Positions 8,987 through 23,617 of a stretch of DNA of 64,000 bases are shown in pieces. Within the stretch, counting starts at the first letter, position 1, and the number at the start of each line of letters is the position of its first letter. The notes under the pieces are model-generated. The model had not been told where the DNA came from. It saw only the letters and a list, made by a program, of their open reading frames with translations, and did not search any database. The translations under genes and the position numbers were made by a program. The stretch lies in sequence record OR413585.1; one strand, given 5' to 3'.

Positions 8987-10120
8987 ATGATGAACTATGA
9001 ACGTAAGCACGCGTGGCAAGAAAAGCTGCGCACTGGGCAGATACATTCTGCTCAACAAGTGAAGATGTGGGTGTTGCCACACGGCGTCATCTGCGAAATG
9101 GTCCAGGTCGGAGGATTACCTATTCTTCGAAATGGCAAATACGATTCGATGAACACGGTACTCGCGCGCTTGCTAGCTGATGCAGGTATAATGGGTACCG
9201 TGATTTTATATTCAACCGCAACGATTCCTCAGAACCTTTCTCGCTGGTTAACACATTGGCTTTCCAATGACCCTAGCGAGGACGATCCGTGGCTACGTTC
9301 GATGACAGTGACAACAATGGGTCAACGGCCGACGAAACCCCTCCCATTCCAGGTCAATGTAATTGAACCAGCTATTCTGGAAGCGGGTGAAGTGTTTGAA
9401 GCAATCAAACATCGATCTCGCGATGTTAGCATCAGTCAGTTTCTTATCGAAGCGAATGATGTGACTTACCGGCTAGAGCCTGTACGACGTATGGACGCTC
9501 GTATCGTCGACTGCACAGAGTTCGGTTATGTCTTGCGTACACAGGGCAACCATACCTTCCTGGCATCGATGCTTTCTCGCCGCGTGCAGGGACAATTAGC
9601 ACACTACAAAGTGTCCCCTGCTGACCTCGTCGGTACCGACGTTAAGGTCGAATACACAATGTTTACCGAAGGGAATCGACTGTGTAATTTTAAGTCTCCG
9701 GTAGTCTATCGGAGTAAGGCACTTGATGCCTTAGGCGACCAGAATGTCCCGACATACGATGGCCCCTATCCGTTTAAATCGCAAGCATCTGCAAACCGTG
9801 CGCTCCTTACGGTAACTCGGTGTAAACGCGCAGCGATCACACGGACCGACGGGGAAATTTATGGTAAGGACACTGAGTCTGACGCAAAACTCTTTTCGTT
9901 CCGGCGTGGTGTGAAACCTGGATTGTATGCCGCGACGTTTGAAAAGGGGGATGACGTCGAGTTCTGGCAGTTCGACAGCGATTTTGCAGTAGATGCGATT
10001 GACCCAGATGCGTTAGTGAGTGTCATCACAGACCAAATCTTTTACGCGACGGGTATGAGCCTGCTGGAAATCTTTTTAATGTACGATGCCAGAGTACCTT
10101 CACAGTCAGTCAAAACGTAA
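8987..10120 (+). CDS. Hypothetical protein (377 aa)
   Basis: ORF with AAGGAG RBS; no motif recognised. Confidence 0.75.
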   Translation: MMNYERKHAWQEKLRTGQIHSAQQVKMWVLPHGVICEMVQVGGLPILRNGKYDSMNTVLARLLADAGIMGTVILYSTATIPQNLSRWLTHWLSNDPSEDDPWLRSMTVTTMGQRPTKPLPFQVNVIEPAILEAGEVFEAIKHRSRDVSISQFLIEANDVTYRLEPVRRMDARIVDCTEFGYVLRTQGNHTFLASMLSRRVQGQLAHYKVSPADLVGTDVKVEYTMFTEGNRLCNFKSPVVYRSKALDALGDQNVPTYDGPYPFKSQASANRALLTVTRCKRAAITRTDGEIYGKDTESDAKLFSFRRGVKPGLYAATFEKGDDVEFWQFDSDFAVDAIDPDALVSVITDQIFYATGMSLLEIFLMYDARVPSQSVKT

Positions 10121-10130
10121 GGAGCCTCCT

Positions 10131-10640
10131 ATGTTTACTGCGCCAACCGTGCAGGTGGGGCAAGGTCTTAACCTGGTGGTACATGACCAGCGGTTAATCG
10201 ACCTCTGCGACACAAGCATAATTACTGCGATGATGGACCATAACCCTTTAGGTGACTACGGAAATACCAGCGAGATTTTGGCTGTTGCTGCCGTCCTCCG
10301 TCGTATTTACGGTCAAATAACCATCGTAGATCTCTGTAACTTCATTGACAACCACAGAGATTTAACTAAAGGGTTGGTCGCACTTACTCAAGATGGTGTG
10401 TCAAGTTTTGACAGTTCTCTTGGTAATTTCCTAGACATCGGTTCCGGGTTCGACTCCGGGCTAATGTTCATCACTCGTGAACGCTACGTCGCCGTCTGGG
10501 AATTTCTGCAACGCATGGGTGTGCATGTTCCTGCAAAGATCATGCATTACCAAACTTACGACCTGAATATTTTCGGGGAGCCAGGGTTATGGATAAAACC
10601 AGTACACCTTGGCCTTGATGGCTACACCATCAAGTGTTAA
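10131..10640 (+). CDS. Hypothetical protein (169 aa)
   Basis: Start moved from 10086 to the ATG at 10131, which follows AAGGAG; ends just before a terminator. Confidence 0.7.
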   Translation: MFTAPTVQVGQGLNLVVHDQRLIDLCDTSIITAMMDHNPLGDYGNTSEILAVAAVLRRIYGQITIVDLCNFIDNHRDLTKGLVALTQDGVSSFDSSLGNFLDIGSGFDSGLMFITRERYVAVWEFLQRMGVHVPAKIMHYQTYDLNIFGEPGLWIKPVHLGLDGYTIKC

Positions 10641-10647
10641 GTCACTA

Positions 10648-10698
10648 GGCGTACTCTCTTCGGGGAGTACGCCAATCTTATTTTTTTTTTATTTTTTT
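10648..10698 (+). terminator. Intrinsic terminator
   Basis: GGCGTACTCTC-TTCG-GGGAGTACGCC followed by a long T run. Confidence 0.85.
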
Positions 10699-11233
10699 GG
10701 TTACTTTTTAACCAACCGGTTAAAGGGGTCTGGGAAGCATCAGAAAACGATTAGGTGGTATCGACGTAGGGTAGCTCGTTTTTGGCAGTTTATCGTTTTC
10801 TAGGGTCGGTTACGTGCGTTTTAGAGGGGGTTATGTATCGAGACAGAGAATTTATTTTTGTCGAGGCGAGGAAATTCAGGGAATGGGGATTCAGGATTGT
10901 ATGTTTTTTAACCAGTTATTAAAAACGCTCTAGAAAGCGCTAGAACGAGATTTAACTCAGACCCAGTACACTTGGGTTCCCTATACCGGAAAATCGCGCC
11001 AGCGGGCCGCTGAGAGCGCGAGAGTGCCATTCCCGTTTCGGTTCCGAGGTGACGGTCGCGGCCGGCGACGACGATCACACGTTGGGTAGCACTTCGTGCC
11101 ATGTCTGAGTGAAAACTGGATCGTTCTGTAACCGACACACACTGTCGGTTACTTACGAGTTCTTTGGGTTGTTTAACTCGCTCTAAAATCCCCCTTAGGG
11201 GATAATTTAATCTAATTCTCAAAATTTCTTTTT

Positions 11234-11490
11234 AAAACAATCACTTAGATTGTTTTTTAGATTGATCCTGTGGATCGGGTCGAAGACCCTTTCCTTATAC
11301 GCGTGCGCGTGCGCACACCCGTATCCTCCAGGATCTTTTAAAAGATATATAATAATATTAAATATAATAATACCTTTAGGTATTATATTTAATTATTATA
11401 ATTATTTATATAAATAAATATATTAATATATTAAGATCTTAAAACGCGTGCAGGCGCGCGCGTGATCCTTATTAAGAGATCGTGATCGGA
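11234..11490. other. Candidate replication origin or packaging site: AT-rich palindrome cluster
   Basis: About 110 bp of almost pure A/T made of stacked palindromes, flanked by ACGCGTGC on both sides; 7 GATC sites between 11264 and 11487. Confidence 0.45.
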
Positions 11491-12400
11491 CGGAAGTCCT
11501 AGTTTGGGTACCCTGTGTATTTTTTACGTGGTTTCCCTATCGTGTGTTCAGACCACCACTCGATGTCCAAAACCCATAGCTTCGGTGGTCGCCTCCCTGG
11601 TCGGTAGACTCTGACAAGTCGACCCACAACACCAACCCGTCCGGGGACGGATTTTTATTCCAACGACAAGCTCCACGAAAATCCCCGCAGAGGGACTCAC
11701 CGCTGTGTGACTCACCGGCTCCTGGACGCCTACGCCTCGAGCCGGTAATTTTTTGATTACGTGAGTTTGTTGTTATATGCGAATAGCGATTGACCGCGCC
11801 AATGGTCCAATCACTTTTAAACCCTGTACGCTAGGGCTCCAAGTCCTGGGACTGATACCCAGGACGCTTTTTCGAAAATACCTACCGTGGTGTCTTCGAC
11901 AAAGCGCAATCTAACACTGCGTGATTTATTATGTTCTGGAAAACTTTCGCCGTGGAACAGAACCGGTGAGCGTCGGCGGGGATTCCGACAATCACCACCC
12001 ATTCAGGTACTCGGTAAATAACCGACCTGCCGACGGTGCTACGTCGGGCGTAGTTCGGTTTGCGAGAGTGTCGAGAAAGTCGACTGCGCACCCATGACAA
12101 AATCCGAGTTGACCGTGGCAGCGCCAGAGGACTGGGCAGCGGAGAGACGTCGTTGAACTTACCTCCGATAGTTATCGCTGATTCCGCTCTGGCGTCGGGC
12201 CAAAACTGATTCGAATTCGGCGTTGCGTCGAAAAGGGGTCTGCGTGTAGAACCGCAGACTTGGGGGATAACTCCGATGAGGAGGTTGGTCCATATCTTGC
12301 CGGCTCGGAACAGACGAGAGGGGTGGGTACTCCCGTTGTGAAACGCCAGTACCTGGCTGATTAAAATTTACAGATTCTGCGTGAGGTATGATAAACCAAA
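11490..12400 (+). ncRNA. Putative structured non-coding RNA block (one large or several small RNAs)
   Basis: No credible ORF; more than ten hairpins, GAAA/GTGA loops, and three stems followed by T tracts. Strand inferred from the T tracts. Confidence 0.4.
12362..12391 (+). promoter_or_regulatory. Candidate promoter (TAAAATTTAC ... GGTATGAT)
   Basis: Middle-type motif plus TATG upstream of the GGAG RBS of the 12415 gene. Confidence 0.45.
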
Positions 12401-12414
12401 CGGAGAATTAAACC

Positions 12415-12990
12415 ATGAACTTGTATCGCATCGGGTTTTACCGAAACGAGATGCCTGAATCGGTTTTGGTTGTCTTAGCCGAAAACGAGGAGCAGGCCAA
12501 ATCCTTCTGGCCGGTTAGCGCAGAGCGTCCAGCGGTTGCGTGCTGCTACGACGGCGCTGTGTCTACCCCGATGGTTACGCCTGGGGTGGTTCTGAAGCAA
12601 GGCCGTTGGGATGATTATTCCCATCCTGGTTTGGAATTTGTTTCCGAATCCGCCAGACACACCTGGAATCTTACCACGGGTAAAACCAGAGTGTATTTCG
12701 GCCACCAAGCCAAGCAACCGTCGCTCATCAAGCTGTACCTGGTTTACAGCGACGTCGCTACCGAAGACTATGTCGACGCCGGAATCATCGTCGGGGCAAC
12801 AACCCCCGAGGCGGCATTCGCACATTGGGACGGCGATAAACCCGGAATCGTTTCGGTTTGTGAGCTACCACTTGAAGCCGGTTTGGTTACGAACATCAAG
12901 TGTGAGCAAGGCCAGGAGCTGACTTGGATGCGCCAGGATTACCTGACGGAAACGACATTCGAGTACACACCGAGGAAGGTGACCCAATGA
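12415..12990 (+). CDS. Hypothetical protein with two copies of a small domain
   Basis: GGAG RBS; MNLYRIG..VVLAENEEQA and IKLYLVY..IIVGATTPEAA resemble each other and the 13714 protein. Confidence 0.7.
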   Translation: MNLYRIGFYRNEMPESVLVVLAENEEQAKSFWPVSAERPAVACCYDGAVSTPMVTPGVVLKQGRWDDYSHPGLEFVSESARHTWNLTTGKTRVYFGHQAKQPSLIKLYLVYSDVATEDYVDAGIIVGATTPEAAFAHWDGDKPGIVSVCELPLEAGLVTNIKCEQGQELTWMRQDYLTETTFEYTPRKVTQ

Positions 12991-13478
12991 CGACGATAGC
13001 GTTCGATGGAAAAGTCTTAGCTGCTGACGGCCAGTTAACCCGTGGGTCGAATATCTGCAACCTGAATACCCAGAAGTTATTCATCTGCCCTTCTGACGAG
13101 GAATGGTGGATTACTGGTGAACGGATTGTGGCGTTCGGAGTAAGCGGCGACATCACAGGACAATTGGCCCTGCTGGAAACTGTCCGCTTGAGACCTGGTT
13201 ACAAGGGGTTAACGCAAAGCTCGCAGTTACCTGCGAAGATGGATTTTACTTTCCTGATGCTTCTGGCCTCAGGGAAAGCGATAGTCGGTGGGAAGCGTGA
13301 AGACGACGTGACGTTGTGGTGGAGTGAAGCCACACCACCTCTGGCAACCGGAAGTGGTTACGAGTATGCGTTGGGTGCGATGAAGATGGGCGCGAATGCG
13401 GTTCGTGCTGTTGAGATTGCGTCCGAATGCGATATCTACACCGGTGGTGAGATTAGCACTTACGAATTACGGAGGTGA
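12987..13478 (+). CDS. HslV/proteasome-beta-like Ntn-hydrolase protease (163 aa)
   Basis: Start moved to the ATGA overlap at 12987, giving M-TTIAFDGKVLAADGQ; later ATGSGYEYA and IASECDIYTGG match HslV motifs. Confidence 0.75.
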   Translation: MTTIAFDGKVLAADGQLTRGSNICNLNTQKLFICPSDEEWWITGERIVAFGVSGDITGQLALLETVRLRPGYKGLTQSSQLPAKMDFTFLMLLASGKAIVGGKREDDVTLWWSEATPPLATGSGYEYALGAMKMGANAVRAVEIASECDIYTGGEISTYELRR

Positions 13479-13571
13479 ATCATGCGGGAGTCAGAAGCAC
13501 GCAAGCTTGACCCCATCAATCGCCTGCGATAACGGGGTAGCGCATCCGTATAAACACGTTTAAAGAATTCT

Positions 13572-13647
13572 AGGAAAGTGACGCAATTGGTAGCGTACCG
13601 GTCTCCAAAACCGGCTGTTTAGAGTTCGAGTCTCTACTTTCCTGCCA
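13572..13647 (+). tRNA. trnW: tRNA-Trp (CCA)
   Basis: Complete 76-nt cloverleaf: AGGAAAG/CTTTCCT acceptor, CCGGT-CTCCAAA-ACCGG anticodon arm, TAGAG-TTCGAGT-CTCTA T arm, encoded CCA end. Confidence 0.93.
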
Positions 13648-13713
13648 CATTTAGCCAACAAGCCCATGATTCAAAGCAGAGTGACACCGAATGTCTAACT
13701 GCGGAGAATAATC

Positions 13714-13956
13714 ATGAACTTGTATTTGCTAGAACGAACTGACGATATCGGGTATGATGAATTTGATTCCATAATCGTGGCGGCTCCTACGGAGCAAGCC
13801 GCGTGTGCAATTCCTCCCGACCGTGGTCATTGGATGGACTGCCGCTGGTTACCGAAAGAGCGCTGGGATGAAGGGCTTACCCTGACCGTTACTCTTATCG
13901 GTACTACGCATTATCCTGCTGGGACCGTCGTTCATGAATCGTTCAATGCTGGCTAA
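13714..13956 (+). CDS. Hypothetical protein (80 aa), single-domain paralog of the 12415 protein
   Basis: GGAG RBS; MNLYLLE..IIVAAPTEQAA; followed by an AGTGGGC-TTCG-GCCCACT hairpin. Confidence 0.7.
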   Translation: MNLYLLERTDDIGYDEFDSIIVAAPTEQAACAIPPDRGHWMDCRWLPKERWDEGLTLTVTLIGTTHYPAGTVVHESFNAG

Positions 13957-13974
13957 ACAGTGGGCTTCGGCCCA

Positions 13975-15000
13975 CTAACCCTATTCGAGCCGTGATACTT
14001 ACTCAGATTGTGCGGGTTGATGTCCCGCATGAGCCGGTAGCAGCTCAGACCTACGGTAAGCCGATAAATCCGTAGCAGCCAGGTACACAAAGCACCAGGT
14101 CGCTTGTACAGGATGCTGGGTATCTGACCGGTCATAACCTCATTCGATACGAGACACGTTTATGCATGAAATACTCCAGTACATCAGGATGTTGATTTCC
14201 AACGTCCAGTTCTGGGTATTCAATCATGTTTGGTTTACAGGCGATGGGTTTTCCCGCAAGGGCCCCACTTACAGACTGGCGTCTCCACGACAACCGTCCC
14301 TAGGGGACAGGCAAGCACCGGCCCATTAAGCCGCTACGCTACGCCTGTAAATCCACAATCTGATAACCGAATGGGATTGAGTTCCCAGTGTTAGGGTGAC
14401 TGTGTGTCACCGTAGGCGCGGTACCTCATACGGCCGGAACGCCACGAATGTACGTGATAGCGGGTGGTGCTTGGAGGCGCTAAGACCTGACCTTGCGGCC
14501 AGGCTCAGAAGAAGAAGTCCATCACCCGCATTCAGAAATGAATTTAGGTTAATTATTATTTATGGAAGTGATGAAATCGTTTACGTGATAACTTAGTAGT
14601 ATGCAACGAACAATACCAGAGTGACTTTACGAGGTTACTGTGGTATATGTCGGTGCTCCGGGCAACGTGTTGCCGCAGATAAGCCCGAGGGAGCTGAGTG
14701 CACTAACACACGCCGGGATGCACCGGCACCTTACAATGGGAGCGCTGTCACCATCAGTGATGACAGGAGTGAAGGATTCGTACCTCACTCGACTGGGCGG
14801 AAGCCTGGGCGTTCCCCCATCTTCACATCATGGCCGGCTTGCCGGTTCAACGTAGACGTCTCGTAAGAGATTTCCAGTCAGGTAACTGATAACACACCTA
14901 AGCGTCGACCTTGGACGTATGGTGTCTGGTTAAGTCCCCCGAAACGGAAACCAGTAGGGGTGTGGTACGTTGAGTGTAACTATCATGATGCCATGAACAA
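13975..15000 (+). ncRNA. Putative structured non-coding RNA(s)
   Basis: ORF-poor; nested long stems (14232-14353, 14460-14529, 14613-14646) and GNRA loops (GCAA, GTAA). Confidence 0.45.
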
Positions 15001-15001
15001 T

Positions 15002-15071
15002 GGCTTTGTAGCTCAGGTAGGTAGAGCAACCTCTTCGAGGAAGGTCGCCGGTTCGAGTCCGGTCAAAGCAA
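15002..15071 (+). ncRNA. tRNA-like element with truncated anticodon arm
   Basis: GCTTTG/CAAAGC acceptor, GCTC/GAGC D arm and GCCGG-TTCGAGT-CCGGT T arm are normal, but the anticodon arm is only 13 nt (ACCTC-TTC-GAGGA); no CCA. Confidence 0.6.
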
Positions 15072-15150
15072 GAGCAGCGAAGTTAGAGGAATTAACACCC
15101 GACTCATAATCGGATATTTCGACGGTTCGAATCCGTCCGTTTGCTCGCCC
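15072..15150 (+). tRNA. Atypical tRNA with CAT anticodon (Met- or Ile2-like)
   Basis: CCGA-CTCATAA-TCGG anticodon arm, GACGG-TTCGAAT-CCGTC T arm, GTTA/TAAC D stem; 8-bp bulged acceptor stem, no U8, no encoded CCA. Confidence 0.55.
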
Positions 15151-15155
15151 CATTT

Positions 15156-15484
15156 GTGTTATCCTTATCCCGAAGGCATTCGAAATAAGACGCGTATCCA
15201 CACACGGGTCAAGGGTAACACGAACCACTTCCGCGGTCACCGTGTCCATTGCCGCCTACCTGCATGGGCTGTCCTCCGACACGGTGACTTCGGGCCAACT
15301 TACAGGCCAGGGCCGTTTGGGTTTTTCTTACGCATCCATCCAGAGCCACCTCGCGCCCTAGTCTGTATACCCCTTTTCTGTTCCTGGTTTGCCAACTAAA
15401 TCAATTAAGCCTGGTGCGTTGCCCTGGGAACAGAAAAACTTATTCGGTTACACACCGAACCCACCCACGAGGGATATGTCGTGG
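15156..15484 (+). ncRNA. Array of consecutive ~55-65-nt hairpins
   Basis: 11-bp stems at 15156/15211, 15236/15278 and 15374/15427, an interrupted stem at ~15301-15366, and two small hairpins. Confidence 0.45.
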
Positions 15485-15525
15485 ACTACCAATAGAAGCA
15501 GCAATAGTAGTAAGAAGGAAGCAAC

Positions 15526-16347
15526 ATGTTTACAGTTAAACGTGTAATTGATGGTGACCGCATTATTACCGAACATGAAAAAGTTCGTATCGGTGACCGT
15601 AAGTCTCGTGTATTCCGCGAGGCATTAAAAATGCTCGAGAACGAGCGCTTCGACATCGTTGTCGATGATGAAAAGTTAGCCCTTAATCCGGGGTTAAAAC
15701 GCGTTGCCCCTGATGTGCCTGATCCGAACACCATGCACCCGTCCGATTATTACAGTTGGCTAACCCGAATGCTTAAAGATCAGGAAGCTGCCCATTTATA
15801 CCTGAAACAGCTTTTCCCGAATCTGGTTATTCCTGATTTGGACGACGTTGCGTTGTTTAACTGCGATGGACGTGGCTTTATCAGCTATGTGCTGGGTGAA
15901 AAAAGTGATGCTGTTCTGGTACTGGACACAAATTCCCGTATACCAGATGCTGTGGCTAGCATACGTGGTGAAATCATCGGTTACGGTACTCCCCCAGAGA
16001 AATTAGGCTGGTACAAACCATCTCCTGATAGCGACATGGCGATCATTGTCTACACTCAGGAAGAACTGCAACAAGTCGAATTAGAGCCTGGTCCATCTAT
16101 CGAGTTCAGTGATGTCCAGGAGCAGTCGCAGTGGATTAACGGTGAGTCTGTTGTTACTGTTTTAAAAGGCGCTCGCCCTGGCGACCGGTCAGTCGATGAA
16201 CTGATTGGCGCAATGTGCATCGAAGAAGAATCTGGATACGATCCTGATAACCAGATCAGTACCGGTGCGTTGTACGAACTGTTTTATAAAGGCGACGAAG
16301 TCTACGTGGTTAACTCTCACGGTAAGACTACCGACGTCCTTCGCTGA
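15526..16347 (+). CDS. Hypothetical protein (273 aa)
   Basis: AAGGA RBS, intact ORF. Confidence 0.75.
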   Translation: MFTVKRVIDGDRIITEHEKVRIGDRKSRVFREALKMLENERFDIVVDDEKLALNPGLKRVAPDVPDPNTMHPSDYYSWLTRMLKDQEAAHLYLKQLFPNLVIPDLDDVALFNCDGRGFISYVLGEKSDAVLVLDTNSRIPDAVASIRGEIIGYGTPPEKLGWYKPSPDSDMAIIVYTQEELQQVELEPGPSIEFSDVQEQSQWINGESVVTVLKGARPGDRSVDELIGAMCIEEESGYDPDNQISTGALYELFYKGDEVYVVNSHGKTTDVLR

Positions 16348-16437
16348 ATTAGCTAACGCCCAGTAGCTATGTTCCTGACGATTAGCCCTCGTCTGACCTT
16401 GTAAGACCTTGTAGATTTACATGCCAACACCAGGGAA

Positions 16438-16480
16438 GTCCTCACTCTTCGGAGTGAGGACAACTCTTTTATTTTTTTTT
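16438..16480 (+). terminator. Intrinsic terminator
   Basis: GTCCTCACTC-TTCG-GAGTGAGGAC followed by a T-rich tail. Confidence 0.8.
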
Positions 16481-16497
16481 GTATCCCAAATATTCAC

Positions 16498-16512
16498 AGA
16501 TAGATATTACCT
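16498..16512 (+). promoter_or_regulatory. Candidate early promoter/operator AGATAGATATTACCT
   Basis: Variant of a 15-mer repeated at 19464, 27372, 27468, 35928, 37344 and 41087; resembles the phiKZ early motif TATATTAC. Confidence 0.55.
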
Positions 16513-16571
16513 AAGTGAGATGAGAAAGCCTCATCTGAATTCCCCCAACTCGACTATAAAAGGTAAGCATC

Positions 16572-17519
16572 ATGTACAGATCAAGTAATCCTAGTGCTAT
16601 TGAAGGATTAAACCAGGATGGCTTCAGCCTCGCAGAAGCAACCCGCATTCGACCTTTCTTACCTCGCAGATTCTTCCCTTTCGGTTCGTTATACAGAACG
16701 AATTTCGACGCTTGGGAAGCGATACGTGCTGTAAAAGATGCACTACAGTACAAGAACTTCGAATTCCGATTTGTTTTCAAATGGGGCAACGGCGAATTGC
16801 TCCACCACTTCGGATTCCAACAGAACGAGTTCATTGAGTATACCTCACCTACGTACCACACCAGGTTCTTAAGTATCGAATTCGTTCGCCATTTCGGCGA
16901 TGCACTCTTTACGGAACGGGCTACAGATGAAAACCACGGACGTAGGCTGATGTTAACGAACGGCGCACTGCGCATCAAGATGAATCGTTTACGGGAAGCG
17001 TATAACCAGCTTATCAATCCTGAACCGGTAATGTTTCCAACTGTAGCTGATTTGAACATTACACCGCTCCAGTTACCTGTGGATGTGGATAGACCGATTC
17101 TGGCAATCCACGCTCTCCAGGCAGGCTATGCAAACTGGTATAAAGAGCACAGTCTCCCGAACACCAGATTGAACATCGCACCGTTTGAGTTGTGCCTGTT
17201 CTTAACGTTACGCAAACAACTCGAGCCAGAAAACTTAGACTTACGTTATCTGGCTAAAACAGATAGCGGTAGTTACTACCCAACGACCTGGATGCTGGCG
17301 GCTGTACTACCCGGCGGTGAAATTATCGGTAACCCAGTCACCGATGTTCAACAGTTACCATCACCGTTAGCACCACCGAAAGATTCAATCTATCCGTACG
17401 CTTCGTGGTACGCGAGCAGTATTGGCGTGAGATGGTTAATGTTACACGTTCCTGAAGAGGTCTATAATTTATTCCCGCATGAGCAATGGCTCCGTGCGTA
17501 TGAAAATCGGTTTGGTTAG
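16572..17519 (+). CDS. Hypothetical protein (315 aa)
   Basis: AAGG RBS, intact ORF between a promoter motif and a terminator. Confidence 0.75.
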   Translation: MYRSSNPSAIEGLNQDGFSLAEATRIRPFLPRRFFPFGSLYRTNFDAWEAIRAVKDALQYKNFEFRFVFKWGNGELLHHFGFQQNEFIEYTSPTYHTRFLSIEFVRHFGDALFTERATDENHGRRLMLTNGALRIKMNRLREAYNQLINPEPVMFPTVADLNITPLQLPVDVDRPILAIHALQAGYANWYKEHSLPNTRLNIAPFELCLFLTLRKQLEPENLDLRYLAKTDSGSYYPTTWMLAAVLPGGEIIGNPVTDVQQLPSPLAPPKDSIYPYASWYASSIGVRWLMLHVPEEVYNLFPHEQWLRAYENRFG

Positions 17520-17533
17520 TAGTCGATGCTTTT

Positions 17534-17562
17534 GAGGGAACTTCGGTTCCCTCTTTTTTTTT
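17534..17562 (+). terminator. Intrinsic terminator
   Basis: GAGGGAAC-TTCG-GTTCCCTC followed by a T run. Confidence 0.85.
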
Positions 17563-17605
17563 CTTTTTTCACGACTGCCTCAGAATCTTATAGGAGGAAG
17601 TTACC

Positions 17606-18022
17606 ATGATTACGCAGTGCTACTACCAGACGCAAGATTTATTTAAAGCATTGGAAGAAAATAAGCTACCCACGACTTTAAGACCGCAGTGCAGTTATTC
17701 AAGAATGCTTGCAAGTGAGGTCTTTCCGGTGCTAATGCAGTTGCCTCAATTCCAACCGTGGCTCGACTCGCTAGATGTGGTAGATGTTGTGGCTATCTAC
17801 ACTGGGTCAGACACACCAACAATAAATACAAGCGAGTGTTTATCCCGTAGCGAATCGTCGGCGATAAATGAAATGCCGCAGCTAATGCCTTCTTTATTCG
17901 ATTCGATGTGCGCTGCAGTTATGCAGAAACGACTACCTTATGAGGAAGTATTCGCCATTGTGTTAGACAGCATCCACGCAATGAATTATAAACACTATAA
18001 AACCCTCGGAACCTTACACTGA
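17606..18022 (+). CDS. Hypothetical protein (138 aa)
   Basis: AGGAGG RBS, intact ORF. Confidence 0.75.
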   Translation: MITQCYYQTQDLFKALEENKLPTTLRPQCSYSRMLASEVFPVLMQLPQFQPWLDSLDVVDVVAIYTGSDTPTINTSECLSRSESSAINEMPQLMPSLFDSMCAAVMQKRLPYEEVFAIVLDSIHAMNYKHYKTLGTLH

Positions 18023-18089
18023 CTTTTTTACGGCAGGCACCTATCTTGTAGGGAGTCTGTGCTGTAATAGATTCCAAAGGAGATGCTCG

Positions 18090-18479
18090 ATGAAAAACAA
18101 ACTGCGTCCGCTGGACGTGATTATGGCGCATCCGGATACCCTCAAGAAAATTAAAGTGGTCAATGAACTTGACCGTGGTCTCCTGGATACTATTCAATGG
18201 GGTTTTACTTTCCACCCCGATGAAGAGAACAACACGCGTCAATTAGATGTCTGCGACGGCGTAGAAATTGATTGGTCTTCTAACGAAGGCTTTGATGATG
18301 TCGTCGATTATGTTAAACAGGCCACCGTTCCTCCTGTGTTCCCAGTAGCGGGTTTAGCGGAACACACAATTTCTCTCCGCCGACTGGTTAACGCTCAACC
18401 AGAAATCGTGCGTGAAGGCGAGGCGTGGACGTCAGGCATTACCCATCATCTTAAGGATGTGCTGGGTGTTGCCGGTTAA
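18090..18479 (+). CDS. Hypothetical protein (129 aa)
   Basis: AAGGAG RBS, intact ORF. Confidence 0.75.
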   Translation: MKNKLRPLDVIMAHPDTLKKIKVVNELDRGLLDTIQWGFTFHPDEENNTRQLDVCDGVEIDWSSNEGFDDVVDYVKQATVPPVFPVAGLAEHTISLRRLVNAQPEIVREGEAWTSGITHHLKDVLGVAG

Positions 18480-18489
18480 AAAAGAAGAA

Positions 18490-18530
18490 GTACCTCTACT
18501 CACGTAGAGGTACGGAATCTTTCTTTTTTG
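18490..18530. terminator. Bidirectional terminator
   Basis: GTACCTCTAC-TCAC-GTAGAGGTAC between convergent genes, with an A-rich left flank and T-rich right flank. Confidence 0.7.
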
Positions 18531-19343
18531 TTACGACTTGAAGCGACCACCGTTCATGTAGTTCCAACGGTTTCCGATGTTGTCGTTGTGAACCAAGCAA
18601 CGTTGCATTTTCGGCAAGGTGTCTTCGAACATTTGACCCGCGTCCGAGTAACCTTCAATAACGTTTCTGAAGGCACCGAACTCCATACCATTTTCCAGTT
18701 TACCAGAATCCATGTCGAAGATCATGGTGTTGTAGATATATTGCTTAACAGCCATAACTGCCAGCTCACCTACAACCGGATAGAAGGCCGGCTTGATTTC
18801 GTTCATCTCCTGGGACAGTTCGTACTTCACCACGAGTTTGGTAGAGTAAACGAACATGCCTGGGTCTTTGATACGGATGGTATTCGGGCCGAGTACCTCG
18901 ACCTCTGGTGAGGCGATACGTGGCATCGCCGACTGACTATCAACCACTTGCTGGGTGGATGCTAATACGCCAGAGGTGGCACCGTCCAGATATGAACCTG
19001 CGGGAGGCATGGTGTACGCCTGTCCGGCAACGGGTGTTACAGAAATGTGGGCATCCAGAATAGGACGACCGCCTGTTTTGATGTCGTCGAGATAATACAC
19101 GCGACTGAAATAATCTTGCGTGTCGTTATCCCAAGGGACACCTTGCAAATCTACTTCTTGATACTGCCCCATTCTGGAGATTTCAGGGACCAGAATCTCA
19201 CGAATAACACGTTGTTGGATTTCGTTATCTACAGAGCTTGCAATTCCCAGTAACTTGAGGTTTTCTGGAACAAAAGCCGCCTGTAGAATCGGGGCAGGAA
19301 TATGCTGTCTGATTTTACGCAGACAGTAGTCGATAACATTCAT
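18531..19343 (-). CDS. Hypothetical protein, possibly virion-associated (270 aa)
   Basis: Start moved from 19595 to the ATG at 19343 (MNVIDYCL), preceded by AGGAG on the minus strand; this removes the overlap with the 19507 gene. Confidence 0.65.
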   Translation of the reverse strand: MNVIDYCLRKIRQHIPAPILQAAFVPENLKLLGIASSVDNEIQQRVIREILVPEISRMGQYQEVDLQGVPWDNDTQDYFSRVYYLDDIKTGGRPILDAHISVTPVAGQAYTMPPAGSYLDGATSGVLASTQQVVDSQSAMPRIASPEVEVLGPNTIRIKDPGMFVYSTKLVVKYELSQEMNEIKPAFYPVVGELAVMAVKQYIYNTMIFDMDSGKLENGMEFGAFRNVIEGYSDAGQMFEDTLPKMQRCLVHNDNIGNRWNYMNGGRFKS

Positions 19344-19463
19344 TCTAAGGCTCCTATGAAGCTCGTAGGACAACTCATACCATCGGGTAATGCTATCCCA
19401 TTGCCTGACATTAAAATACGTTTTACGACCTTTATGTGCGCACCATACTCGAAGAAATTTTGC

Positions 19464-19476
19464 ATAGATATTATCT
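19464..19476 (+). promoter_or_regulatory. Candidate early promoter/operator ATAGATATTATCT
   Basis: Repeat motif 30 nt upstream of the 19507 operon. Confidence 0.55.
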
Positions 19477-19506
19477 TCGTGAATTATCCTTAAGGAGCAT
19501 TTCTCG

Positions 19507-19827
19507 ATGACGCGCATGTTCTTTAATTTCTCTCCAGGGACAAATGAACAGATTGTGCCTGCGGACATGTTACTGTGCGCGATACAAGAAGTCATTTATC
19601 CCGGCACGCATGAGTTTCCACGCGAGTGGACACGCATTGCCGAAAGTTATTTTGGCACGGAAGCGTGGTTTGTTATTTCGGCGTTGGGCCGAAACCATAG
19701 CTATCCCTTTCATTACAAAAATGGAGTTGTGCAAACGTGGTCAGAATATACCTCGAACCAGCTGCGGTTCATTCTAGCTTCTGGGGGCCTGTCGATGCTT
19801 CCCAGTACGCTACCGCTCTGCGGATGA
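19507..19827 (+). CDS. Hypothetical protein (106 aa)
   Basis: AAGGAG RBS; first gene of a coupled operon. Confidence 0.7.
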   Translation: MTRMFFNFSPGTNEQIVPADMLLCAIQEVIYPGTHEFPREWTRIAESYFGTEAWFVISALGRNHSYPFHYKNGVVQTWSEYTSNQLRFILASGGLSMLPSTLPLCG

Positions 19828-20387
19828 GCCAAAAAGAACGCGAGATGTTAACTGTACAACTGTTACACACTGCGCTCGAAGATATCTTTTACTCCGTTCC
19901 GGAAATGCCTAATGCACGTATGGAACCTTTGCTGGAACCTTATACTGACGCTTTTAATCTCACGATGATGTTGGTGGCTGACCAGATCATACTTCCACCG
20001 AAAACAGTTCCTGTGGAACGTACACACGTTTCCAGTGGCGGTTTGGGTACTCCGGTTAATAAGACGAAAGAGACCGTAGCGATTTTACGTTCTACCGAAT
20101 ATCTTATCGGATTAGCATTCGAAGACTGTTACAACAGTTTCCTGGACAGTATCCATGCGCTTGTGGAGAATGCTGTGAAAGCCGCCAAACACCCGTTTAA
20201 TCGTTATGCGACGATTAAACTGGAACCACACATAACCCGTCGTGGGCAGGTGCAATCTCTGGAGTTACAAATTGGAGAAGACATCAGATTCATCCACTAC
20301 CGCCAATGCTTCCCAAACAAACGATATCGTCCGTCTGGTACTGATCGATCACATTGCCTCGACGGCATACGTCAGGATATTGAATGA
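19824..20387 (+). CDS. Hypothetical protein (187 aa)
   Basis: Start moved to the ATGA overlap with the previous stop. Confidence 0.65.
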   Translation: MSQKEREMLTVQLLHTALEDIFYSVPEMPNARMEPLLEPYTDAFNLTMMLVADQIILPPKTVPVERTHVSSGGLGTPVNKTKETVAILRSTEYLIGLAFEDCYNSFLDSIHALVENAVKAAKHPFNRYATIKLEPHITRRGQVQSLELQIGEDIRFIHYRQCFPNKRYRPSGTDRSHCLDGIRQDIE

Positions 20388-20709
20388 CCCTAGCGACATC
20401 ATGTTCAGCATGTATGATGTTAACACGGGGTTGAAGCATATCATTCTCTGTATGCTCGAATACATGATTCCGACATTTACAGAACACGGTGCGTGGGACA
20501 CAGAAACAGTCTCACTGATTGTTAGGTGTTATCGTCCCAGAAGTCATTCGCGGGAAATCCACACCATCGCGTCACACGTTCATCGTGCTATCTGTGAGGA
20601 AATGGGCATTCCTCCGAAAGGGTATCGGTATCATTATAATCAAGCAGACAGAATTCTCCGTTTCATTCCACGTAAGGTAACAGATGTCTATGATGACGGT
20701 TTATACTGA
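20242..20709 (+). CDS. Hypothetical protein (start uncertain; 20380 or 20401 more likely)
   Basis: Open frame within the operon; the called start overlaps the previous gene heavily. Confidence 0.5.
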   Translation: MGRCNLWSYKLEKTSDSSTTANASQTNDIVRLVLIDHIASTAYVRILNDPSDIMFSMYDVNTGLKHIILCMLEYMIPTFTEHGAWDTETVSLIVRCYRPRSHSREIHTIASHVHRAICEEMGIPPKGYRYHYNQADRILRFIPRKVTDVYDDGLY

Positions 20710-21091
20710 GTTCGTGCGATTGACTTGCCGACTCACCGCACTCGTCAAAGAGAATCTCGGCATCGATTACCAGGATGCTGCGGTAGAGCTTGACGACTAT
20801 ATCGAGCAAATTGTTCGGTTGCACGTTCTGCGGAAAAAATATGGCGTTATCGATAGCATGATACGCCAGTTCTTTATGGAGTATGTTCACGATAACCCAA
20901 TCATTACTCCAACCACGTCGGCAAAATACTGGGCTCTTTGTCGATTTGAGTTGTTGATACGGGACACCGATTGCATCTGGCAAGCAATCGACGAGGACAT
21001 GACTTATTTACCACAATCCGACTTTCTCCTCTGGCATGTAGGAGACGGTGTCTGGAAAATGTTAACTACAGGGGTTACTTACAATGATTGA
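20684..21091 (+). CDS. Hypothetical protein (135 aa)
   Basis: Overlapping ORF in the operon, preceded by AAGGT. Confidence 0.65.
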   Translation: MSMMTVYTEFVRLTCRLTALVKENLGIDYQDAAVELDDYIEQIVRLHVLRKKYGVIDSMIRQFFMEYVHDNPIITPTTSAKYWALCRFELLIRDTDCIWQAIDEDMTYLPQSDFLLWHVGDGVWKMLTTGVTYND

Positions 21092-21593
21092 GCGATCTCA
21101 TTTTTATATCCCCGGCTATCAGTTATTGGCTGGGCCGTTAACGGAGTTTTCGCCAAACGATGTGCTCCGCGAAGTGAATGACGATTTGAACTCGATAATC
21201 AATACCGCCATGAGCTTCGTGGAACGTGGAACCATTGGTAGTGAGTTAAAGTTTATGATGAACAATACCTTTGGGTTTGTTTCTCGTACACTGAATGCGC
21301 ACGGCATTGTGTTGGAAAATGAGCAAGTAATCACTTACGGCACCGCAATTCAAAACATCGGTCGTGCGTATATGACCGCCGTATCGCAGTCTCCTTATTG
21401 GTTTACTCACTACGGTCGTTGGGTCGGTGCACAATACACAACGCGCAATCCGGCGGATGTCGAATTCTTATTAGACTATAACGGTGGTGATAAATTCCCA
21501 CAGTTTGCCAGCCAAGAAGCGTACGAGCGAATCACCCCACAACTTCTGCCTGTTATCGATTTGCTTATCGGTAATCTCGGAGGTCGTGTATGA
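21084..21593 (+). CDS. Hypothetical protein (169 aa)
   Basis: Overlaps the previous stop; AGGGG RBS. Confidence 0.7.
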   Translation: MIERSHFYIPGYQLLAGPLTEFSPNDVLREVNDDLNSIINTAMSFVERGTIGSELKFMMNNTFGFVSRTLNAHGIVLENEQVITYGTAIQNIGRAYMTAVSQSPYWFTHYGRWVGAQYTTRNPADVEFLLDYNGGDKFPQFASQEAYERITPQLLPVIDLLIGNLGGRV

Positions 21594-22078
21594 GCGTTCT
21601 GTTTGATGTGGCGGATATTGCGAACCAATATAGCGCGACTCGGTTTTACGAGCATGTTCGTGAAGCGGCATTGCGTGTACTGGAAGCCAGTAACCTGGAG
21701 ATTGATGAAACACAGATACGTGATTTTTATCAACGTTTTGCGTTTGCGTATATCATCGGTGTGAAAACTCGTGACCCTTCGACGATGGTTGATTTGTTAC
21801 AGGAAGACACGCTTGAACCTCTGGGCAATTGGGAGTTGGTGTCCGATGGTCTGTCCGTTGACCAGTTCGCTAAGGAAACGTCTGTCGATACGACGTTTCT
21901 GGCAGCACAAGGTTCGCCCGAACAACATCAAGCCGCCTTCGGCGCTGCGGTAAGTTTGCTGGCCGAAGAGTTAACAAACTTAACTGGTTTTGCTGGGCTG
22001 ATAGAGTCGCTGTATCCGGGGCGATATCAAACGTATGTGGGTGATAGTTTTAACGATGTGGTGTTAATCTGCGAATGA
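21590..22078 (+). CDS. Hypothetical protein (162 aa)
   Basis: ATGA coupling, GGAGG RBS. Confidence 0.72.
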   Translation: MSVLFDVADIANQYSATRFYEHVREAALRVLEASNLEIDETQIRDFYQRFAFAYIIGVKTRDPSTMVDLLQEDTLEPLGNWELVSDGLSVDQFAKETSVDTTFLAAQGSPEQHQAAFGAAVSLLAEELTNLTGFAGLIESLYPGRYQTYVGDSFNDVVLICE

Positions 22079-22506
22079 AACTGTACATGACCATAGGCGA
22101 AGTCTTCAAATATGAGTCGTTGTTGGCACGGGCCGAGATTGCTGATACTAGCGAGATCGAGCCCGCTGTCGCTTATTTGTTTCTGGCCAGTTACGCCGAA
22201 TTAACGGTACGTTCTATTGTTAATGGGCTAGGTAAGGGTAAGAACTTTCTTACTTTTATTCCCCCAGACCCTGCGTTGATACTGGAACAGTTGCGCGGGC
22301 TGTGGGGTACTGAAAAGGTGCTGCCTCTAAACTGCTACAGCATGAGCAGTGGGATTAAGGATGATGTTCGGTTCTATGAAATCCTTTCCGTGATAGAACG
22401 TGTGTGGGGCATGGCTGGCTTGACTCCAGAAGACGGAGCAAAAAAGACAAAGGTTTCACTCCTTATGAATGAAATTGGCAACGCACTCATCTGTGTTGAA
22501 TGTTAA
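22075..22506 (+). CDS. Hypothetical protein (143 aa)
   Basis: ATGA coupling. Confidence 0.65.
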   Translation: MKLYMTIGEVFKYESLLARAEIADTSEIEPAVAYLFLASYAELTVRSIVNGLGKGKNFLTFIPPDPALILEQLRGLWGTEKVLPLNCYSMSSGIKDDVRFYEILSVIERVWGMAGLTPEDGAKKTKVSLLMNEIGNALICVEC

Positions 22507-22515
22507 GGAGTACGA

Positions 22516-23115
22516 ATGATCTACAAGGTGATCGCCAACCACTTGATTAATGTGGACTTGGGGGTCGTGGGGTATCTTCCGGACGGTAAGCGGTTTTTGG
22601 ATTTGGTGGTTGACACCGTGGTCCGCCTACCGCGTATCACCGTGGAGATACCCGTAAAAGAATTGGACCAGGACGAGATACACGAACTTATACGTGAAAC
22701 GCTGACTAGCTATACGTACGAGTTTCGCTGCATGTTGCCTCGCACCGACCTTACGTTCTTGCACGACTTCTTTACGTTACTGACTGACGAGTACCGTCGG
22801 TGGAAGTTTAATGTTGCAATGGAAGCCAGCACTGTGTCACATTTTAACGGGCTGACACCATTGTTAGATTTAGCGTTGATGTACAAAGAGCAAGACAGTT
22901 CACACTGGGCTACGCTCAAGCACTACACGTTGGATCTAATGGCGACCGCCGTAACGGAGGCAGTTATGGCGCATTATGTTGAGCCGGTGAAGATGTTCTT
23001 AGAGGCGCATAATGGCGCTATCCGTACGTTGGTTCTCAAGGTGGACTTCCCGAAAACACCAGTGACCAATGCTTTGGATATGAGGCTGCTTATTGATGTT
23101 CCTGAGGAGGAATAA
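22516..23115 (+). CDS. Hypothetical protein (199 aa)
   Basis: AAGGAG RBS. Confidence 0.72.
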   Translation: MIYKVIANHLINVDLGVVGYLPDGKRFLDLVVDTVVRLPRITVEIPVKELDQDEIHELIRETLTSYTYEFRCMLPRTDLTFLHDFFTLLTDEYRRWKFNVAMEASTVSHFNGLTPLLDLALMYKEQDSSHWATLKHYTLDLMATAVTEAVMAHYVEPVKMFLEAHNGAIRTLVLKVDFPKTPVTNALDMRLLIDVPEEE

Positions 23116-23525: not shown

Positions 23526-23528
23526 AGT

Positions 23529-23562
23529 AAGCCCACTCTTCGGAGTGGGTTATTTTTTTTTC
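23529..23562 (+). terminator. Intrinsic terminator
   Basis: AAGCCCACTC-TTCG-GAGTGGGTT followed by a T run. Confidence 0.82.
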
Positions 23563-23617
23563 TTTTTTCACGTATCCCGCAAGTCTTATAGCTGAGTAAA
23601 AAACCAAGGGGCCAGAC

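Follow-up and report, generated by a model that had tools for sequence, protein, structure and literature searches.

Upstream of an HslV-like peptidase gene in the Salmonella jumbo phage SPLA5c (Seoulvirus, SPN3US-like) lies a long leader RNA. This RNA is transcribed and structured, does not code for protein, is conserved in relatives, continues into the operon behind it, and is complementary to 16S rRNA. The window, the whole 64-kb stretch of DNA analyzed here, is 100% identical to OR413585.1. Because this RNA is better preserved than the adjacent protein genes and matches no described family, it probably controls the downstream genes, perhaps by ribosome binding.

Coding status and conservation of the locus

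The annotation of the public record is empty in 10640–12415, and the gap (10641–12414) is syntenic across four genera; no gene-free gap near the terminase gene is longer. The first gene after the leader is that of the HslV-like peptidase (12415–12990), although the first gene downstream of the core described below varies between genera. The original prediction, made from the letters of the DNA, held that 11490–12410 has no credible ORF and is non-coding, and both claims are upheld: no ORF longer than 72 amino acids occurs there on either strand, mismatches by codon phase are flat in the leader (63/50/58, compared with 76/71/107 in the HslV-like gene), and most leader indels are not multiples of three (14–17 of 17–24, in comparison with SPAsTU, pEa_SNUABM_29, and phiEaH2). 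The flat periodicity, these indels, and the non-conserved frame also speak against small ORFs or a leader peptide. No PHROG families were found for the ORFs at 10609–11417, farther upstream in the gap. An AT-rich block upstream of the leader is conserved across genera and untranscribed, and 7 GATC sites occur within the 300 nt at 11201–11500, where 0.65 would be expected.

Leader identity is 78% to SPAsTU, 70% to pEa_SNUABM_29, and 60% to phiEaH2, while flanking protein genes are 45–52% identical between genera (48–52% for the HslV-like gene). By this measure the leader is under stronger purifying selection than the neighboring genes, and selection appears to act on RNA rather than on protein. 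The most widespread part, a ∼260-nt core (12112–12372), occurs as a single copy per genome in Seoulvirus, Erskinevirus, Machinavirus, and Wellingtonvirus. A search with a model of its 3′ domain gave no match in Derbicus, pVa-21, RAY, Goslar, or pPa_SNUABM_DT01; in Derbicus the syntenic gap is only 420 nt, with no core match. The RNA is interrupted by an HNH cassette of ∼640 nt in Kwan and Wellington, so that the full fold is either dispensable in these phages or forms across a long insert. A pattern scan for the invariant 28-mer of the core (see below) gave matches confined to phages of the four genera plus one chance match, and none in genome contigs; the chance match, a metagenome locus (L024), has a 22-mer in common and nothing else. 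No description of the core RNA was found in literature on SPN3US transcriptomes, jumbo-phage non-coding RNAs, or the 22-mer.

Structure of the leader and core

Every stem listed in the original prediction is present at its place, and the claim of a structured RNA is confirmed by comparison with relatives. Helices maintained by compensatory changes are the decisive evidence for structure beyond chance. Covariation was counted on alignment A3, with slid partners and 500 shuffles as controls: the core comprises 53 pairs in 8 helices, with 89.8% of cells paired (35–45% with slid partners), and 26 of the 53 pairs have double (compensatory) changes; none of the 500 shuffles attained the observed score. 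The 3′ domain alone is 97.8% paired, the core architecture is also recovered in per-lineage folds, and the fold of 11894–12414 has a z-score of −2.65. Conserved G-U pairs and a loop restricted to GNRA fit an RNA made from the + strand, on which the leader elements described here lie.

The 5′ half of the long leader (11890–12111) contains the blocks CUUCGACAAAGCG, CUAACAC, and UAUGUUC, a hairpin (11965–11996) with the loop GCGGGGA, and the invariant CACCCAUUCAGGUA (11996–12009). Seoulvirus and Erskinevirus have all of these in conserved form, and Machinavirus has the first three. The GTCGA-GAAAG-TCGAC hairpin of the original prediction (12070–12084) is present in the SPLA5c sequence, but SPLA1a, SPFM11, SPAsTU, pEa_SNUABM_29, and phiEaH2 have gaps at this place.

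The 5′ domain of the core (12112–12232), supported by covariation, comprises the 5′ strand of helix P1 (CCGU, 12113–12116), a GGC/GCC helix, and helix P2 (12121–12129 with 12187–12195), whose arms are CGCCAGAG (12122) and CTCTGGCG (12187). Double changes occur in 5 of 8 pairs of helix P2, the GGY/RCC helix switches from C-G to U-A, and the hairpins P3 (12149–12169, with the invariant loop AACUUAC) and D (12216–12232) also covary. A pseudoknot is possible between the loop AACUUACC and GGUGA, both sides of which are near-invariant. Hairpin E (12238–12259; GUCUGCG-UGUAGAAC-CGCAGAC) has double changes in 4 of 7 pairs, and is followed by hairpin F (12262–12291), with a 5′ strand GGAU..CUCC and the 3′ strand GGAGGUUGGUCC (12280–12291). 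The core carries GGUGAUCC as well as the invariant 28-mer UCUUG(G)CGG-CUCG-GAA(C)AGA-CGAG-AGGGG (12295–12323), which includes hairpin H (12304–12318) and is identical across the four genera except at three positions, the SPLA5c clade having one extra C. Hairpin I and the sequence after it (12322–12369; covariation) comprise 14 pairs, a GNRA loop, a conserved GCUGA, and an A/U-rich tail. In SPLA5c this hairpin reads GGTACT...CGTT-GTGA-AACG...AGTACC within 12322–12358; 97% of its cells are paired, double changes occur in 9 pairs, and the loop varies within GNRA only (GUGA, GAGA, GCGA, GGGA). In the resulting model, a long-range helix, CCGU/GCGG, would close a multi-helix domain, followed by two hairpins within the invariant 28-nt junction.

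Similarity to known RNAs was sought with Rfam 15, which covers riboswitches, T-box, ribozymes, group I/II introns, GOLLD, ROOL, OLE, 6S, tmRNA, and RNase P. As the original prediction had it, no family was recognized: the gathering score gave no match in 10600–12600, and a limit of E ≤ 10 gave only four noise matches, all at 10685–11467 and upstream of the structured stretch. In other parts of the window, the same scan did recover tRNAs and a genuine group I intron. A tRNA-mimic domain, predicted around a T-loop-like CTGA-TTCGAAT-TCGG, was not borne out, in that its arms and loop are variable, or absent in Machinavirus; the conserved hairpin at this place is TTCGGCG-TTG-CGTCGAA (12216–12232). 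ARAGORN and Rfam show no tRNA or tmRNA in the leader, and the sole tRNA called by ARAGORN is tRNA-Trp at 13572. A group I intron was considered because an HNH endonuclease gene lies inside the RNA in Kwan and Wellington, and was rejected for want of a model match and of exons to splice. Two further resemblances were set aside: GGUACCGCG resembles a T-box sequence but is located in helices P1 and P2a, with the T-box model unmatched, and CCCCGC (11680) and GCGGGGAT (11973) resemble, by eye, the halves of a type I-E CRISPR repeat, but are 281 nt apart.

Promoter-like motifs, terminators, and transcripts

T(A/G)TG motifs, each preceded by a T-run and TAC, are conserved at three sites (P1, P2, and P4), and the early-type promoter motif is absent from the 10641–12414 gap. 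The first, P1 (11520–11549; a T-run, TAC, 15 nt, and TGTG, with its G at 11546), is conserved in Seoulvirus, Erskinevirus, and Wellingtonvirus 510–590 nt 5′ of the core, and RNA contigs start at 11558 and 11566, 12–20 nt 3′ of it. In the promoters of the phiKZ non-virion RNA polymerase (nvRNAP), the G of TATG is the start site (PMC5312081); P1, a putative promoter, resembles these. The second motif, P2 (11747–11781; a T-run, TTAC, and TATATG, with its G at 11779), shares the T tract of terminator T2, and its sequence TATATGCGAATAG occurs with at most two mismatches in all Seoulvirus and Erskinevirus loci examined, and in no others. The third, P4 (12367–12391; TTTAC, 15 nt, TATG, G at 12390), precedes the ribosome-binding site (RBS) and start of the HslV-like gene. 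P4 follows the core in many lineages, but is missing in pEa_SNUABM_9, pSal-SNUABM-04, Huxley, SPAsTU, and pEa_SNUABM_29, where the RBS comes directly after the core. Given its position between core and gene in SPLA5c and many relatives, some mRNAs may be made without the core.

The first transcript would begin with a hairpin, GACCACC (11551)...GGTGGTC (11584) (11551–11590), which is retained in Seoulvirus without informative changes. Three terminator-like elements follow, in each of which a U tract comes immediately after a hairpin rich in G+C; a terminator scan detects T1 and T3, and T2 was seen in the sequence. T1 (11637–11659, with CCGTCCGGGGACGG at 11637–11650) is semi-conserved in Seoulvirus. 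After it, GACTCACCG occurs as a direct repeat at 11694 and 11709. T2 (11714–11754) has 8-bp arms (ACCGGCTC at 11714, GAGCCGGT at 11739), a 17-nt loop, and T6, and its arms covary (TCCGGCC/GGCCGGA in SPAsTU, CGCCCC/GGGGCG in phiEaH2). T3 (11843–11874; GTCCTGGG...CCCAGGAC at 11843–11865, then T5) has arms which covary in phiEaH2, and a T3-like terminator is present at the equivalent place in ChrisDB. Overall, 10 terminator-like sites occur in 10500–13000, compared with 2.8 ± 1.5 in shuffles.

Transcription of the stretch, as proposed in the original prediction, is evident from three public RNA runs (X9, X33, and X11), which are contig assemblies without strand information, and of which X11 may contain DNA. 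These assemblies span 11560–12414 and not the AT-rich DNA upstream: in X9 and X33 there is almost no cover over 10625–11557 (depth ≤2.5), and cover across 11558–12414. All three have a break at T3, whereas a DNA-like run covers the whole region evenly with no break there. The X9 and X33 contigs begin at 11889–11894, and X11 has a template-switch-tagged 5′ end at 11856, within the T3 loop, so placed that its RNA still includes the T tract. Depth in X9 and X11 is 6–8 times higher 3′ of T3 than 5′ of it. The X9 contig extends from 11894 through the gene at 12415, and in both X33 and X11 a single contig (not a single molecule) joins 11856/11894–12414 to the HslV-like gene; depths in X33 are 2236 for the leader and 2614 for the gene. 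As the contigs continue into the gene at the same depth, the core RNA is a long 5′ leader. The predicted ∼500-nt ornate RNA thus stands with respect to its start near 11890, which fits two independent RNA assemblies, but it is not a free-standing gene. Similarly, the three short terminated RNAs that were predicted correspond to three conserved hairpin/T-tract elements whose arm changes keep pairing, but since the contigs read through T1 and T2, they reflect partial termination at best.

Taken together, 11546–12414 would be an untranslated leader, probably made by the phage non-virion RNA polymerase, running into an operon which begins with the HslV-like gene and extends as far as tRNA-Trp. In its first 300 nt, short RNAs and attenuated read-through would probably result from the two promoter-like motifs and the three terminator hairpins there. 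A ∼520-nt RNA would begin at ∼11890, and its last 260 nt (12112–12372) appear to be a new structured RNA family.

The 16S rRNA complement and possible functions

The 3′ strand of hairpin F, GGAGGUUGGUCC, is complementary to the 3′ end of 16S rRNA over 8–13 bp, and its 5′ strand resembles that end. The duplex with GGAUCACCUCCUUA (−22.0 kcal/mol) is the strongest in the 64-kb window on both strands, ranking first of ∼25,600 windows scored, and the same site scores best in 20 of 20 lineages (−17.6 to −25.5), even though the letters vary. The site is ∼10 nt 5′ of the invariant junction and ∼100–125 nt before the first start codon; no start codon occurs 5–9 nt 3′ of it. The nearest candidate start, an invariant UUG, is 11–14 nt from GGAGG, which is too far for efficient initiation, and the real start is ∼120 nt away. 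Within hairpin F, the GGAG half of the 16S complement is base-paired, with covariation (CAC/GUG, CUU/AGG), so the Shine-Dalgarno (SD) resemblance may in part be a by-product of a purine-rich stem. Additionally, in most lineages CUCC could pair instead with a G-run upstream of it or with the GGAG downstream.

The explanation we tentatively favor is a new cis-acting leader RNA, whose domain would engage the 30S ribosomal subunit and in this way influence the genes that follow. Hairpin F would present its 16S complement, or mask it against the internal look-alike, and the site could be a ribosome standby or loading site, or a brake; the mRNA would fold completely inside the phage nucleus before meeting ribosomes. 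In this account the identity of the polymerase, the 5′ ends, the cis action, and the ribosome binding are inferences. It is rather unlikely that the core is a new phage RNA class which binds the host 30S through the 16S 3′ end, as a decoy or dedicated loading platform that would bias translation while a nucleus-forming phage infects the cell, or else an aptamer for a signal.

Release of the core and of the short terminated RNAs as trans-acting non-coding RNAs, by termination or processing, is rather unlikely; their targets could be, for instance, a host or phage protein, the ribosome pool, or mRNAs, with operon co-transcription incidental. A conserved macromolecular partner is suggested by the conserved loops and the invariant 28-mer, and the greater depth 3′ of T3 and the tagged 5′ end in its loop hint that the RNA is processed or differs in stability. 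In many lineages the core, with P4 after it, looks like the end of a unit of its own, and in Wellingtonvirus hairpin I is followed by AUAUUUUU. Against such release, RNA contigs cross from the core to the gene without a change in depth, and there is no consistent terminator after hairpin I, with the RBS in several lineages 20–30 nt beyond. A riboswitch-like sensor, whose multi-helix domain binds a small molecule, tRNA, or protein and thereby sets operon read-through or translation, would explain the aptamer-like combination of covarying helices and nucleotides that are invariant in junctions and loops, the position at the 5′ end of an operon, and the alternative pairings of CUCC. We nevertheless consider it improbable: Rfam aptamers are unmatched even at E up to 10, neither a conserved terminator/anti-terminator pair nor sequestration of the real RBS was found, the first downstream gene differs between genera, and the gene content suggests no ligand.

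Selection could also act on DNA, with the transcript secondary and the 28-mer a binding site for protein, for example a packaging (pac) site, or with the untranslated transcript beside the AT-rich, GATC-rich stretch priming replication as an R-loop. In chimalliviruses, which have no primase, R-loops have been put forward as the means of priming (PMC13648698); the long gene-free gap near the terminase gene, the GATC cluster, and the conserved, untranscribed AT-rich block would also be accounted for. Compensatory changes, conserved G-U pairs, and the GNRA-restricted loop point instead to selection on a folded RNA, and transcription heads away from the AT-rich block, which makes a DNA-level element very improbable. 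Least probable of all is a translated upstream ORF beginning MAARKDERG... at the invariant UUG (12297–12299), whose translation would open hairpins H and I and couple to the next gene. Its 20-codon frame ends at the conserved GCUGA in 12 of 20 lineages, and a very strong SD-like sequence lies upstream. However, the SPN3US clade has a 1-nt insertion that puts it out of frame, other lineages have a frame of only 13 or 14 codons or one exceeding 54, the invariant part has no synonymous variation, with a sole change (AAA/GAA) that alters the residue, and the spacing from GGAGG is that given above.

Little is known of the non-coding RNAs of jumbo, nucleus-forming phages, whose mRNAs arise within a protein shell where ribosomes are absent, and can therefore fold completely before translation. 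Purifying selection stronger than on its neighboring genes, the best match in this genome region to the 16S tail, and a 28-nt junction that is invariant make this leader a testable handle on the control or prioritizing of phage translation, or on another RNA function. The covariation-supported model of the core could seed a new RNA family, and its assignment as structured RNA disposes of "hypothetical proteins" wrongly annotated across it in some relatives. Should the 30S-binding or the aptamer reading be true, it would be a functional RNA class without a described relative.

Comparison with known systems further defines the leader RNA. Similar to extended Shine-Dalgarno sequences and ribosome standby sites, it has a 16S complement (8–13 bp) far above that of ordinary RBSs in the window, but its site is partly hidden in a hairpin, ∼100–125 nt upstream of the gene, and lacks a start codon at working distance. 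With riboswitches, T-box RNAs, and protein-binding mRNA leaders it shares the 5′ leader position, conserved junctions, covarying helices, and possible alternative pairings around the SD-like segment; known aptamer and T-box models are unmatched, however, and no defined expression platform was found. The HK022 put and EAR processive antitermination RNAs are, like the core, structured cis leader RNAs, and the core likewise precedes an operon with structured tRNA genes and terminators; no likeness in sequence or structure is known, the terminators here are upstream of the conserved domain, and the polymerase in this phage is a multisubunit phage enzyme, unlike the setting of put and EAR. GOLLD and ROOL are also phage-encoded, multi-helix, and non-coding, and proximity to tRNA genes is a further shared trait, with tRNA-Trp 1.2 kb downstream of the core; in contrast, the core is smaller (260 nt), has no Rfam match at any threshold, and is limited to four genera of enterobacterial jumbo phages. 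Furthermore, whereas GOLLD and ROOL are typically free-standing genes, the core RNA belongs to an mRNA leader.

Locus and Conservation of the Leader

The 1.6 kb around the finding are 100% identical, with equal coordinates, to Salmonella phage SPLA5c (OR413585.1), a member of the genus Seoulvirus among the SPN3US-like jumbo phages. This record has no annotation from the end of a 169-aa gene (10640) to the start of a 191-aa gene (12415), leaving a 1.77 kb gap whose right half is occupied by the finding (11490-12410); its SPN3US counterpart lies at 251-1183, at that record's arbitrary start. As the original prediction claimed, the interval holds no credible ORF (the longest touching it has 72 codons), and the stems it listed were all found, with the coordinates first read for them. 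Terminator-like hairpins are enriched in 10500-13000 (10, vs. 2.8 ± 1.5 in shuffles), and 11894-12414 folds better than shuffles (z = -2.65); taken without comparison to relatives, both measures are poor support.

Sensitive blastn against 50,697 phage records matched the region in 60, all SPN3US-like phages of Salmonella, Escherichia, Proteus, and Erwinia. The gap is syntenic across Seoulvirus, Erskinevirus, Machinavirus, and Wellingtonvirus, where a phrog_9731-type gene is followed by the long gap, small genes, the HslV-like peptidase gene, and tRNA-Trp. Identity across the leader (the untranslated RNA upstream of the HslV-like operon; 11548-12414) is 78% in SPAsTU, 70% in pEa_SNUABM_29, and 60% in phiEaH2, higher than in the flanking genes (48-52% for the HslV-like gene, 45% for the upstream gene). 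Mismatches are flat across codon phases in the leader (63/50/58, vs. 76/71/107 in the HslV-like gene), and 14-17 of 17-24 leader indels are not divisible by three. Together, these features argue that purifying selection of a non-protein-coding kind acts on the region. In relatives, "hypothetical protein" CDSs are annotated over the conserved core (Huxley gp278, L009 1468-1881; phiEaH2, L004 2004-2132) and over the leader upstream of it (phiEaH2, L004 1654-1773; pEa_SNUABM_29, minus strand, L003 1530-1808); these are probably spurious calls.

Architecture of the Core RNA

Alignments of the core (12112-12372) drew on isolates, IMG/VR, and metagenomes for up to 20 distinct sequences, with extra loci retrieved by the pattern CGGCTCGGRAN{0,1}AGACGAGAGGGG. 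Common to the aligned cores is a 28-nt block (UCUUGGCGG-CUCG-GAAAGA-CGAG-AGGGG), variable at three positions only, which has one additional C in the SPN3US clade (window 12295-12323). The hand-curated core model (53 pairs in eight helices) was counted on alignment A3, where 89.8% of cells are standard-paired, vs. 35-45% with the 3' partners slid by 1-3 columns. Homolog collection with covariation had been proposed as a check on the structure, and it upheld the prediction: both-sided changes occur in 26 of the 53 pairs, and the observed covariation score was reached by none of 500 column shuffles. The stem observation is solid because of this comparative evidence, not because of the hairpin count or fold z-score. 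The 3' domain alone is 97.8% paired, with double changes in nine pairs.

On the + strand, the long-range helix P1 joins CCGU (12113-12116) to GCGG of the 28-nt block with almost invariant letters, while a GGY/RCC helix within the core switches from C-G to U-A between genera. Helix P2 pairs 12121-12129 with 12187-12195, and a hairpin at 12149-12169 has the invariant loop AACUUAC. Hairpins D (12216-12232) and E (12238-12259) are followed by H, within the 28-nt block, and I (12322-12358), whose tetraloop variation is confined to GNRA. The conserved G-U pairs are consistent with the + strand being the RNA, and minimum-energy folds, computed lineage by lineage, agree with this architecture. A further hairpin, F (12262-12291), lies between E and the 28-nt block.

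A covariance model of the 3' domain found a single copy in each of the genomes of SPLA5c, phiEaH2, pSal-SNUABM-04, pEa_SNUABM_11, and Kwan, and no match in Derbicus, pVa-21, pPa_SNUABM_DT01, RAY, or Goslar. Judged by terminase identity, Derbicus is the next closest genus, and its syntenic gap measures only 420 nt. Erwinia phage Kwan (L011 1017-1872), and likewise Wellington (L022) and L014, carry a ~640-nt insert within the RNA, an HNH endonuclease gene plus its flanks, between hairpin F and GGUGAUCC, and a degenerate partial target copy remains at the upstream junction (GGTTGATCC..GAAAAGACG). pEa_SNUABM_11, of the same genus as Kwan, is without the insert.

The original prediction recognized no family here, and Rfam 15 likewise gave no match in the region, whether at gathering score or with E relaxed to 10, in scans that pick up a group I intron and tRNAs elsewhere in the window. 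The RNA was also undescribed in the literature searched, including with a 22-nt query from the RNA itself. The proposed tRNA-mimic domain was dropped: neither Rfam nor ARAGORN makes a call there (ARAGORN reports tRNA-Trp only), and the supposed T-loop varies among relatives. The group I intron (30810-31131; 67.9 bits, full-length model) lies at the end of a long + strand ORF (29462-30970), with the next ORF at 31427. Two weak Rfam tRNA calls (15002-15071, 40.9 bits; 15074-15145, 30.6 bits) are not reported by ARAGORN, and the public record has a minus-strand CDS (15013-15249) there instead.

Transcription of the Leader

In two index searches, several RNA-labelled public runs had a word share of 0.73-0.77 for the core, vs. 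0.31-0.35 for the whole gap. Four runs (X1, X9, X11, and X33) were placed on window 9500-14500 as contigs, which are unstranded and are not single molecules. X1, a DNA-like wastewater run, covers the gap evenly (depth ~32). Across 10625-11557, cover is zero in X9, a wastewater metatranscriptome, and 0-2.5 deep in X33, a transcriptomic run with depths of 10,000-25,000 in the flanking genes and ~2,200-2,400 in the leader. Cover in X9 and X33 extends from 11558/11566 to ~11832/11840 and resumes at 11889-11894, and the X33 contig from 11894 runs on into the HslV-like gene (depth 2,236 vs. 2,614). Within the limits of unstranded contigs, the leader region is transcribed and the AT-rich DNA upstream is not; the core is on RNA contiguous with the operon, as seen in contigs rather than single molecules. 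Depth upstream of the terminator-like hairpin T3 (11843) is 6-8 times lower than downstream in X9 and X11, and in X11 a template-switch oligo sequence is fused at 11856, within the T3 loop, marking a + strand 5' end. Because such tags occur at both ends of some contigs, X11 may contain DNA.

The first gene after the leader (12415-12986; 191 aa, no family) varies by presence and absence as an exact cassette: in two runs, contigs connect 12414 straight to 12987, and in SPLA3, SaP7, and similar relatives the match ends at ~12418, the matched feature in SPLA3 being the HslV-family peptidase gene. Upstream of the leader, 11180-11500 is AT-rich (30% GC) with many palindromes, GC-rich flanking repeats (CGCGTGCGCGTGCGCAC, ACGCGTGCAGGCGCGCGCGT), and seven GATC sites within 300 nt, against a window-derived expectation of 0.65. 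This block is kept in four genera, has essentially no cover in X9 and X33, and may be a replication origin or other DNA-level element. An unannotated leftward unit is possible at 10908-11222 (- strand), where a minus-strand ORF (ATG 11103, ~63 codons) ends at a terminator of that strand (10947-10926); in X11, positions 11078 and 11343 are tagged minus-strand ends, X33 cover is near zero, and the unit has no PHROG family match.

Possible Roles and Promoter-Like Motifs

We consider it very probable that this is a genuine, new, structured, transcribed non-coding RNA. A possible function is suggested by hairpin F, whose 3' strand (GGAGGUUGGUCC; GGAGGUGAUCC in several relatives) is complementary to GGAUCACCUCCUUA, the 3' end of 16S rRNA in Enterobacterales. 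This duplex (-22.0 kcal/mol) is the strongest in the 64-kb window with both strands scanned, where ~6 distinct sites in 128 kb reach -17 kcal/mol, and every one of the 20 lineages has its best duplex at this site (-17.6 to -25.5 kcal/mol) despite differing letters. The covarying stem accounts for the GGAG part of the complement; for the conserved GUGAUC part, no partner is evident. Since the 5' strand (GGAU..CUCC) resembles the 16S tail, hairpin F has the look of a Shine-Dalgarno/anti-Shine-Dalgarno helix copied within the RNA. The leading reading, held tentatively, is that of a cis-acting leader whose conserved domain would act on the HslV-like/tRNA operon by engaging the 30S subunit.

A trans-acting RNA released from the leader is a less likely account, and a switch sensing a ligand or protein is less likely again. 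Because the HNH cassette splits the RNA in Kwan and Wellington and the first downstream gene varies, we argue that the 3' domain would be the essential unit, and that it is not an autoregulatory operator for one particular protein. An element acting as DNA (a pac site or R-loop origin, for example) is improbable, and a translated uORF slightly more so. An invariant UUG 11-14 nt downstream of GGAGG opens a 20-codon frame to a conserved GCUGA in 12 of 20 lineages; the extra C puts the SPN3US clade out of this frame, and elsewhere it stops at 13 or 14 codons or exceeds 54. The shift and varying ends exclude a conserved peptide and make a conserved uORF unlikely.

Upstream of the core, the sequence is conserved in blocks (11480-12112) in Seoulvirus and Erskinevirus (alignment A5). 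Here, the + strand hairpins T1 (11637), T2 (11714), and T3 (11843) are each followed by a T tract, and in SPAsTU and phiEaH2 the two arms covary in T2 and T3. Machinavirus ChrisDB has a T3-like terminator, then GUCGACAAAGCG, CUAACAC, and UAGUAUGUUC, all preceding the core. A motif consisting of a T-run, TAC[G/A], 14-16 nt, and T[A/G]TG occurs at 11520-11549, 11747-11781, and 12367-12391. In two of these three copies the T-run is also the T tract of the terminator before it, and Erskinevirus and Wellingtonvirus have a counterpart of the first copy 510-590 nt ahead of the core. An AT-rich consensus, AGATAGATATTATCT, occurs at nine places in the window (1.1 expected): 16498, 19462, 27372, 27376 (- strand, overlapping the preceding copy on the opposite strand), 27465, 33652, 35928, 37344, and 41087. 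Most copies lie ~40-75 nt upstream of gene starts, and a scan of the whole window placed none in the gap. In phiKZ, TATG promoters with initiation at G serve the non-virion RNA polymerase, and the early promoters of the virion polymerase have a long AT-rich consensus (PMC5312081). By comparison with AR9 and phiKZ, AGATAGATATTATCT is likely the consensus of early promoters (virion RNA polymerase) in this phage group; from its absence in the gap and the TATG-type motifs at the leader, we infer that the non-virion polymerase probably transcribes the leader.
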